64,000 bases of DNA from Macrostomum lignano (lineage: Eukaryota), in the NCBI GenBank assembly GCA_002269645.1, contig NIVC01002299.1, positions 1-64,000 of the forward strand. The letters are read 5' to 3'. Below the pieces are notes generated by a model. The model did no database searches, was not told the origin of the DNA, and saw only the letters and a list, made by a program, of their open reading frames with translations. Of the stretch, positions 11,401-14,400 are shown in pieces. Every line of letters starts with the position of its first letter. The first letter of the stretch is position 1. The position numbers and the translations under genes are program-made.

Positions 11401-14400
11401 AGTCAGACTGTGATGGACAAACAGGTGATGAATCTTGATGGTAATTAGCCAGAATGTGATGGACAAACAGGTGATGAATCTCGATGGTAATTAGTCAGAC
11501 TGTGATGGACAAACAGGTGATGAATCTCGATGGTAATTAGTCAGAATGTGATAGACAAACAGGTGATGAATCTTGATGGTAATTAGTCAGACTGTAATGG
11601 ACAAACAGGTGATGAATCTCGATGGTAATTAGTCAGACTGTGATGGACAAACAGGTGATGAATCTCGATGGTAATTAGTCAGACTGTGATGGACAAACAG
11701 GTGATGAATCTTGATGGTAATTAGTCAGAATGTGATAGACAAACAGGTGATGAATCTCGATGGTAATTAGTCAGACTGTGATGGACAAACAGGTGATGAA
11801 TCTCGATGGTAATTAGTCAGAATGTGATAGACAAACAGGTGATGAATCTCGATGGTAATTAGTCAGAATGTGATAGACAAACAGGTGATGAATCTCGATG
11901 GTAATTAGTCAGAATGTGATAGACAAACAGGTGATGAATCTCGATGGTAATTAGTCAGACTGTGATGGACAAACAGGTGATGAATCTCTATCATCTATAT
12001 ACTCGTATAGATATTAACAACCCTTCAGAAGGCATTGAAAGCAAGAGAAAAAGCAGCTAAAACTGCAAATTCAGCATGCAGCAAGCAGTGTCGCAAAGTC
12101 GTGCAGTAGCACACGCTCAAATCCAGGACAATGTAACGCAAATTATCCCATTAGCTGCTGCTTTCTGATTTACACTACGCTCGTATTATAAGAGGCAGGC
12201 AAAACAAAATAAGTTAGGAACAAATGACAATAGCTTGGCTGGAGAGAAATTGAACAGTATATAGGGTTGCTTCCGGTTTCTAAAATAAACACCGAATGCT
12301 TTACAGCATAATGTTGTGCTGTTGTACGAGATAGAACTTCCTTGCTTCTCTTTAATTCAATTTACTCCTTTCCCTAATCCCCCTAAACATGTCTCACGCA
12401 GGCTGGTCACATTGGGGGGCGATTCAATTTGTTTAGCAGCTTTGCAAAATGGGATAGCGCTGTACATTGTTATGGACTAGCGAGCGTGGTCACGCCGACT
12501 TGCCAACCGCTTGTGCACAGCGGGAAAATTTTCCGGACAAATTCGATTGAGCAATCCTACAGCTCGCCAACAATTTGGCGTTGCAAATTTAAACAACTGC
12601 GCGTTTAAGGAAGGGGGCGTGCGGCGCCGTCTCTCTACACTTTTGTATTGATAGAAAACAAATAGAAACATTATCGTTGTCATAGCAACCAGCCTGCGTG
12701 CGACTGCTATAATAATGCATAAGCCTAGTAAAGTGCAACTGCAAAATTAAGGCGCGCTGTTTCGCCTTCTCTCCAACCAGCCGCCCAAGGAATGAGTCAA
12801 TAGGCGGAATGGGATAGAAAAACGTGCATAGAGGAAAGCGCTGGATTAATTTAAAATATCCAACCTATCTTTGAAACCCCAATCAACCAGTTACGGTCAA
12901 CTAAATTTGCTCTAGGCCCGTTTTCGATGCAAAAGAAGGAATTGGAATTCTTCGGTTTTTAGCACTAAATTCCATATGTTTCTCCTTTAGGACTTTTGAA
13001 TTCCAAATGAAGCAGGTTATGCGTTTTTTCGAGGTGCACTAATAGTTCGAAGCTAGTAGGGGATCTGATATCTTAGGCTAGCTGGCTTTCTTAGATAGCT
13101 GGCTTTCAGGACGGATGCTTTTTGCTTTAAAAATCATTTCCCTTAAGAAATTAACAATAGTGACTGTACAAGGCTAAAATGTACGAGACAGCTCATAGAC
13201 AGCCAACGGGGGCCGCAGATTGCTAGTTTCCCAATACTAAAAATGCGGCTTTTAATTCACTTGAAACTTAAGCCTAAGCCCACGGTCTCTTTATACGCTA
13301 TACCATCGCCTCCTCTCTATACATTCTGGCCACTCATTATTTCCCCACTTAGCTAGAATTGCTTAGGTTTAATCTAATCAGAGCGGGGCACTCTCTGATT
13401 GGCTGGAGAGGGTCAGAACTTGGAGGAGGCGGGGCGACGATTAGCCAATGTACATCTATGATCGTACTTTGGGTTAGAGGGCTAGTAGAGGCGCCGAGAA
13501 AAGGCAATGAATGATTGAGGCAATAAAAGATGCGAAAAGTAATCATCTGGACGCACGCTCGCACGCCCCCACCTATTCATAGCGTTACACATCTCAATGA
13601 CAACGAGCACGCTCAGTGCCATCGTCATCGGCTTCGGGTGCGAGAAAATTGCGCAATCGATGCCTTCAAATCGCGACTCCTGGGCAAGGCACTGCGCCTG
13701 GTGGGTCTGGAATGGCGGGACAACAAAGGAGAATAGCAAGGTTAATACTAATTGGCAGTTAATCCGCCTCACCTGTTCATAGCATTGAGCATTTCAATTA
13801 GCACAAGGACAGATAAGGCCATGGTCATTGGCTTTGGATTATTGAATATTTTGCAGTCGATGCCGGCAAAGTTTTGCTCCTCGGCCAGGCACTGCATGTG
13901 ATGCGTCTGAAAGAGCCGATCAATTAACTCTATGGAATTTGCAAACATACATGTAATGCGTGAAGTAAGCGAATAGCAGATTGTTCAGTAGGTAGCTGAG
14001 CTGTATAATGGCAGATTTTTTAGTATGTATCTGAGTTGAATAATGGCAGATTTTTTAGTATGTAGCTGAGTTGAATAATGGCAGATTGTTCTGTGGGTAG
14101 CGGAGTTGAATAATGGCAGATTGTTCAGTATGTATCTGAGTTGAATAATGGCAGATTGTTCTGTGGGTAGCGGAGTTGAATAATGGCAGATTGTTCAGTA
14201 TGTATCTGAGTTGAATAATGGCAGATTGTTCTGTGGGTAGCAGAGTTGAATAATGGCCCAGAGCACAGAGCACAGATGTGATTATTCAACACCTATTCCA
14301 CGCTAATGTAAAGATAAGGTCGGGTGGACTTGTGTATGACATTTATTTGGCCATTATTTGGCCATTTGGCATGTAGGGGTGAGCAATGGAAATCCTGACG

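Follow-up and report, generated by a model that had tools for sequence, protein, structure and literature searches.

Several described systems resemble the splicing arrangement reported here. A membrane helix and the outer loop next to it are exchanged by mutually exclusive exons in the ion channels CaV1.2 (exon 8/8a) and NaV (exon 5N/5A), and in the alpha subunit of the insect Na+/K+-ATPase. In pairs of the FGFR2 IIIb/IIIc type, the two exons are frame-incompatible and their exclusive use is policed by mRNA decay, and exons 2 and 3 of alpha-tropomyosin form a pair governed by steric hindrance. SERCA is among the best-studied membrane pumps and could be a drug target against schistosomes and tapeworms, and arguments about what its long lumenal loop and disulfide do still draw on work with mammalian SERCA2b. 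Splicing at the C-terminus, with tissue-specific use reported, gives rise to several pumps from one gene in vertebrates (SERCA2a/2b) and in Artemia, C. elegans and Pinctada fucata, and invertebrate SERCA splicing has been described at the C-terminus only (PMC3527596, PMC6987452). Here, a 64,000-nucleotide (nt) stretch of DNA from the flatworm Macrostomum lignano (GenBank assembly accession number GCA_002269645.1; contig NIVC01002299.1, positions 1 to 64,000), referred to as the window, was analysed. A first-pass annotation made from the sequence alone had reported a tandem pair of mutually exclusive exons, here named 8a and 8b, in a SERCA gene in this window.

The 8a/8b pair is like the ion-channel and Na+/K+-ATPase pairs in consisting of equal-length tandem exons that cover one transmembrane segment and a loop, change few residues and have been conserved for a long time. 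It differs from the channel pairs in protein family, and from the Na+/K+-ATPase pair in the segment concerned, and the variable side in SERCA faces the lumen of the endoplasmic reticulum. As in the FGFR2 IIIb/IIIc type, the exon length is not divisible by three, and inclusion of both exons or neither leads to a premature stop upstream of later junctions, with decay predicted to follow in Macrostomum. The very short spacer and a putative branch point near the upstream donor recall alpha-tropomyosin exons 2 and 3; however, short spacing is confined to flatworms, and a 37-nt intron is removed in a related flatworm locus. C-terminal SERCA splicing also yields several pumps from one gene, whereas the event described here is an internal, equal-length, homologous swap of residues 871-914 (L7-8 and M8) that leaves the tail unchanged. 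The pair is rated as a deeply conserved new case of a known type of splicing event, and not as a new kind of system. No published account of this SERCA exon event was found in the open-access literature and bioRxiv, and the pair is already implicit in public isoform annotations.

Alternative exons 8a and 8b in the M. lignano SERCA gene

The SERCA gene lies on the minus strand of the window (Table 1), and two alternative 134-nt exons separated by a 66-nt spacer were found between exons 7 and 9. Both are flanked by AG/GT splice sites, the borders being ...tttcag/ACG...AACAG/gtgagg for exon 8a and ...ttccag/ACC...AATAG/gtgggg for exon 8b. The exons are paralogous, sharing 90 of 134 nt and 33 of 44 amino acids (aa; 75% protein identity), and in reciprocal tblastn searches each matched the other with an E value of about 1e-20, far outside chance. 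The first-pass annotation proved accurate in these respects, as its lengths, splice sites and translations of both exons, and the donor (14548) and acceptor (10105) that they have in common, were recovered without change.

Alignment to solved structures placed the alternative exon at residues 871-914 of SERCA1a (870-913 of SERCA2). The lumenal Cys pair (C876/C888 in SERCA1a; C875/C887 in SERCA2) and the Ca2+-site Glu (E908; E907 in SERCA2), which the first-pass annotation had assigned to both exons, were located by the same alignment. The corresponding residues C6, C18 and E38 of the exon are kept in 8a and 8b, and in all 19 exon copies from the ten loci described below.

Each alternative exon is entered in phase 0 and left in phase 2, and the earlier claim that both together, or neither, would shift the reading frame was borne out. 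When 8a and 8b are joined, a stop is reached at 13627-13625, and when neither is included a stop is reached at 10099-10097 (minus strand); each stop has two or three exon junctions downstream.

The window locus was compared with an old M. lignano paralog (L004) to examine selection. Exon 8a differed from its counterpart by 15 synonymous changes and one nonsynonymous change (synonymous divergence, pS, 0.58; nonsynonymous divergence, pN, 0.009) and exon 8b by 19 synonymous changes and none that were nonsynonymous (pS 0.69, pN 0), and for the rest of the gene pS was 0.51 and pN 0.033. When 8a is compared with 8b of the same locus, synonymous divergence has reached saturation (pS 0.90) and pN is 0.19. 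The introns of the two loci could not be aligned outside the exon pair, and conservation in the spacers is limited to the donor GTGAGGCG and the acceptor TTCCAG. As a relic exon would carry tens of nonsynonymous changes, both exons have been kept by selection, and both are under strong purifying selection between the M. lignano paralogs, as would be expected from the first-pass reading of the pair.

The evidence strongly supports reading 8a and 8b as functional exons that arose by tandem duplication, are mutually exclusive and exchange L7-8 and M8. Two other explanations were rejected: an assembly or duplication artefact is ruled out as the source of the pair by its presence in independent assemblies of ten loci, and the selection tests rule out a pseudo-exon.

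The same exon pair in five phyla

A cuttlefish protein model with two tandem copies of the segment (P0001) led to a check of genomic loci by tblastn, a comparison with other flatworm and lophotrochozoan SERCA loci that had been suggested in the first-pass annotation. An A-type exon, corresponding to 8a, was located upstream of a B-type exon, corresponding to 8b, in all ten loci examined, which represent five phyla. The pair is intact in nine of these, and all 18 exons in the nine are exactly 134 nt long with AG/GT borders. In the tenth, from the cestode Dibothriocephalus (L003; spacer about 146 nt), the only break in the A exon is a run of Ns at an assembly gap. The spacer is 66 nt in the window locus (Macrostomorpha), 53 nt in the M. 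lignano paralog, 50 nt in the monogenean Cichlidogyrus (L002) and 80 nt in the trematode Clonorchis (L009). It is 122 nt in the annelid Capitella (L008), 699 nt in the brachiopod Lingula (L007), 749 nt in the nemertean Tubulanus (L005), 1004 nt in the gastropod Littorina (L006) and 4023 nt in the cephalopod Acanthosepion (L001).

Two residues distinguish the exon types without exception across the five phyla. Exon position 4 is M in all A exons and A or S in all B exons, position 9 is E in all A exons and Q in all B exons, and these positions flank the first lumenal Cys. A homolog search with a 54-aa exon-B peptide returned 25 short exon-sized open reading frames (ORFs) and nothing else, and was uninformative on the B exon outside Spiralia.

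In the Lingula anatina locus, the exon directly upstream of the A/B pair was also found in two tandem copies (about 33206-33291 and 34013-34098). Each copy is 86 nt long with AG/GT borders and encodes the end of M7 (...YVG..WWF..GPxLNxYQL), and the two copies are possibly a second mutually exclusive pair beside the first.

Origin and use of the two exons

An exon tree was constructed by neighbour-joining with bootstrap from the 44 residues only, and was poorly resolved. Bootstrap support for a clade of all B exons was 11.5%, and the A copy of the cephalopod grouped with its B copy at 77%, both of which weigh against a single origin of the pair. The weak resolution and the cephalopod cluster would fit an alternative in which the pairs arose independently in several phyla via recurrent tandem duplication of the same exon. 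However, exon order, boundaries, phase and the 134-nt length are common to all ten loci, and the type-fixed residues at positions 4 and 9 also speak against separate origins. A flatworm-specific clade of A and B exons, moreover, received only 0.9% support, and all B exons except that of the cephalopod form a clade in the best tree. The cephalopod clustering is compatible with, and suggests, partial gene conversion in that lineage, and recurrent duplication is considered improbable. As the tree is poorly resolved, the case for a single origin is drawn mainly from the order of the exons, their boundaries and the two diagnostic residues, and a single old duplication appears to be the most economical reading of these features together with the phase. 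It is very likely that 8a and 8b are a mutually exclusive pair that arose long ago, when an exon was duplicated in tandem in an ancestor of spiralian animals with a single SERCA gene.

The first-pass annotation had also proposed that one gene makes two pumps, and this was found to agree with annotations in other species. Same-length isoform pairs in which the difference is confined to this exon are annotated in at least eight species, among them Schistosoma bovis, S. haematobium, S. rodhaini, Heterobilharzia, Trichobilharzia regenti, Clonorchis, Mesocestoides and Pomacea. Isoform sets of the oyster Crassostrea include both exon types, either one combined with several C-termini, and the A and B proteins of Littorina both map to a single locus (L006). 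Among cephalopod-like and annelid-like sequences, contigs of 3.5-5.4 kb that lack introns and code for about 1000 aa carry one exon type each, and both types were seen.

At the M. lignano locus itself, the proposal was matched less closely, as the transcript-derived models for the family of this gene (Mlig019375 g1/g6) carry B only, and those of the paralog family (Mlig008428 g2/g4 and Mlig013231 g2) carry A only. A model that contains exon A and the flanks of this locus is present in UniProt (P0244), but it bypasses the GC donor of exon 9 and therefore looks prediction-based. These points weigh against the use of both exons here, and would be accounted for if 8a were an unused relic, with the window gene using 8b only, the paralog 8a only, and no alternative splicing within one gene. 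The substitution counts given above argue strongly against this, because synonymous divergence close to saturation and introns that can no longer be aligned indicate that no copy of either exon has drifted neutrally. Gene conversion would have wiped out the synonymous differences too, and both isoforms are seen from one gene in other species; the relic explanation is thus very improbable. The use of 8a at this locus is suggested by selection together with the one prediction-style model, P0244, and we infer that the two exons are also exclusive of one another at this very locus. The two old M. lignano paralogs nevertheless appear to prefer opposite exons, B in the window gene and A in the paralog, and both exons are kept under selection in each of them. 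The duplicated genes may thus have partly shared out the isoforms.

A third, more distant SERCA paralog of M. lignano (Mlig003161; P0251/P0253) is about 82% identical and has a hydrophobic C-terminal extension. The Mlig003161 proteins include one version of the exon, which is different from both 8a and 8b (THHLQCTGDDTKFFGIDC...).

Five proteins that include both exons (P0001, P0122, P0242, P0245 and P0288) were found to be gene-model chimeras. In P0001, P0122, P0242 and P0245, a cryptic GT inside exon A (13804 or equivalent) is joined to exon B, and P0288 includes the two exons in full and ends in an aberrant C-terminus. The fused public models come from cuttlefish, M. lignano (UniProt A0A1I8JJ10 and relatives) and Schistosoma margrebowiei. 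These are annotation errors that arise because the exon is duplicated, and recognition of the pair explains why such errors recur.

Differences between the predicted pumps

The A and B pumps differ at 11 of 1000 residues, of which nine are in the lumenal loop L7-8 around the Cys pair. The remaining two, which correspond to T906 and C910 of SERCA1a, fall in M8, and the two pumps share both Cys residues and the Ca2+-binding Glu. Two differences emphasised in the first-pass annotation need to be revised. The loops had been said to differ in charge, but the net charge is equal, each version having three acidic residues, two basic residues and two His. The contrast of L versus C two residues after the Glu is present here, but is lineage-specific rather than type-specific across taxa, with L in most B exons.

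The type-specific residues that are conserved across phyla lie at -2 and at +3/+4 relative to the first Cys. As M8 differs at two positions only, and the L/C difference is lineage-specific, the conserved difference between the pumps is the loop around the first Cys. Since no other type-specific residues are conserved across phyla, it is likely that the exon swap tunes a lumenal property of the pump, such as disulfide reactivity, interaction with a lumenal partner or exit-gate kinetics.

A broader scenario is put forward tentatively, and is possible but somewhat doubtful. One duplication before the flatworm, mollusc, annelid, nemertean and brachiopod lineages split would have led to two SERCA classes from a single gene, distinguished by residues beside the first Cys of the lumenal disulfide and with different redox or lumenal-partner control of Ca2+ uptake, and the forms would then have been partly divided between the M. 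lignano duplicates. If this is true, the two spiralian SERCA classes are a splice-encoded counterpart of the vertebrate paralog and 2b-tail diversity. As matched natural pumps that differ almost only in this loop are available from at least five phyla, the function of the loop is open to a direct test through expression of both forms. The existence of two target isoforms also matters if SERCA is considered as a drug target against schistosomes or tapeworms, and the exon pair corrects the view of invertebrate SERCA splicing as C-terminal only (PMC3527596, PMC6987452).

How exclusivity may be enforced

In the arrangement proposed here, exon 7 would be spliced to either 8a or 8b, and the chosen exon would then be spliced to exon 9. 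Exclusivity would be maintained at least by the reading frame, as 134 nt is 3n+2 and inclusion of both exons or neither would cause a frameshift and a stop before later junctions, such that the transcripts would be degraded or would direct a truncated product. The frame incompatibility is universal because every exon copy is 134 nt long. The very short spacer in flatworms (50-80 nt; 66 nt here) could add steric interference.

The first-pass annotation had gone further and taken a TTAAC branch point at +31 as a sign of steric exclusion. If steric hindrance were the main cause, as in alpha-tropomyosin exons 2 and 3, the 66-nt spacer with its branch point 31 nt from the 8a donor would be unspliceable. 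The size of the spacer is consistent with this, as the spacers of 66 and 53 nt are the shortest of the 20 introns in the two M. lignano SERCA loci and all others are at least 78 nt long (at least 86 nt in the window gene and at least 78 nt in the paralog). The earlier statement that the spacer is the shortest intron thus holds for this gene, but the next shortest introns are 86 and 87 nt and not 84 nt. All flatworm loci with an intact pair have short spacers (50, 53, 66 and 80 nt), with about 146 nt in the gapped Dibothriocephalus locus. However, the assignment of a branch point at +31 amounts to no more than a motif match, and the Cichlidogyrus locus has a constitutive 37-nt intron between exons 9 and 10, close to its 50-nt spacer and shorter than it, that is spliced. 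As the spacers in the annelid, brachiopod, nemertean, gastropod and cephalopod range from 122 to 4023 nt, steric hindrance cannot be the ancestral or conserved mechanism, and it is unlikely to be the main cause of exclusion.

Other candidate signals were also sought. No conserved pairing of the docking-site or selector type was found, as no intronic block of one M. lignano paralog, apart from the exon pair, could be aligned with the other. The inverted repeats near the exons are mostly parts of a minisatellite, and none is common to the loci. GCATG (Rbfox-type) motifs were absent near the exons in both M. lignano loci and had no consistent position in the other loci. A minimum intron size for the M. 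lignano genome was not found in the literature.

Gene model and additional features of the locus

The encoded protein is a SERCA (P-type IIA Ca2+-ATPase). The translation includes the DKTGT motif, and a near-identical protein (P0121) has the Pfam domains PF00690, PF00122, PF13246, PF00702 and PF00689. The C-terminal 166 aa matched chains of solved SERCA2 and SERCA1a structures with E values of 4e-74 and 1e-70, respectively. For construction of the gene model (Table 1), a SERCA1a sequence served as a search guide only, and splice sites were then set by eye. Translated with exon 8b, the gene model matches the M. lignano protein PAA59063.1 (P0241; BOX15_Mlig019375g1) exactly over the full length, which validates it. 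The M. lignano protein models in GenBank are the product of a genome-guided RNA-seq transcriptome assembly (PMC5730564). In gene order, the intron lengths are 87, 98, 86, 1180, 190, 460, 641, 66 (the spacer), 3467, 101 and 505 nt, and a separate terminal exon follows ...KYTD.

Table 1. Coordinates of the SERCA gene and associated tandem arrays in the 64,000-nt window
Feature	Position	Strand	Details
SERCA (P-type IIA Ca2+-ATPase) gene, M. lignano	9235..19252	minus	11 exons
Exons E1-E3	19252-19135, 19047-18947, 18848-18354	minus	
Exons E4-E6	18267-17557, 16376-15921, 15730-15370	minus	
Exon 7	14909-14548	minus	M5-M7; C-terminal end ...GPQLNYYQL; donor after 14548 common to 8a and 8b
Intron 7	13907..14547	minus	641 nt, 5' of exon 8a; not alignable with the intron of the paralog
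Exon 8a (A-type)	13906-13773	minus	134 nt; second half of lumenal loop L7-8 with both Cys, and M8 with the Ca2+-site Glu
Spacer	13772-13707	minus	66 nt; donor GTGAGGCG, TTAAC motifs, pyrimidine tract, acceptor TTCCAG
Exon 8b (B-type)	13706-13573	minus	134 nt; exon of the deposited transcript-derived model for this gene
Intron 3' of exon 8b	10106..13572	minus	3467 nt; about half is minisatellite
Exon 9	10105-9988	minus	SLSENQSL...HVEFMS, M9; acceptor common to 8a and 8b; GC donor (GCAAGT)
Exons E10, E11	9886-9769, 9263-9235	minus	E11 includes the stop
Minisatellite, 46 nt x 38.8 copies	10207-11988		in the 3467-nt intron after exon 8b
Minisatellite, 35 nt x 8.2 copies	13972-14257		in intron 7
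Minisatellite, 24 nt x 5.6 copies	15772-15907		in intron 5
Tandem array, 38 nt x 30 copies	20344-21490		upstream of the gene
Tandem array, 24 nt x 21.5 copies	22117-22631		upstream of the gene
Tandem array, 21 nt x 29.6 copies	23042-23660		upstream of the gene

Two of the introns have GC donors, CAG/GCAAGC after exon 4 (17556-17551) and TCG/GCAAGT after exon 9 (9987-9982), both on the minus strand, and the paralog has GT at both sites. Prediction-style models bypass the GC donor of exon 9, with loss of the residues VEFMS. The three intronic minisatellites, of which that with the 46-nt unit makes up about half of the intron after exon 8b, were not found in the paralog. The tandem arrays upstream of the gene produce long spurious ORFs on both strands.

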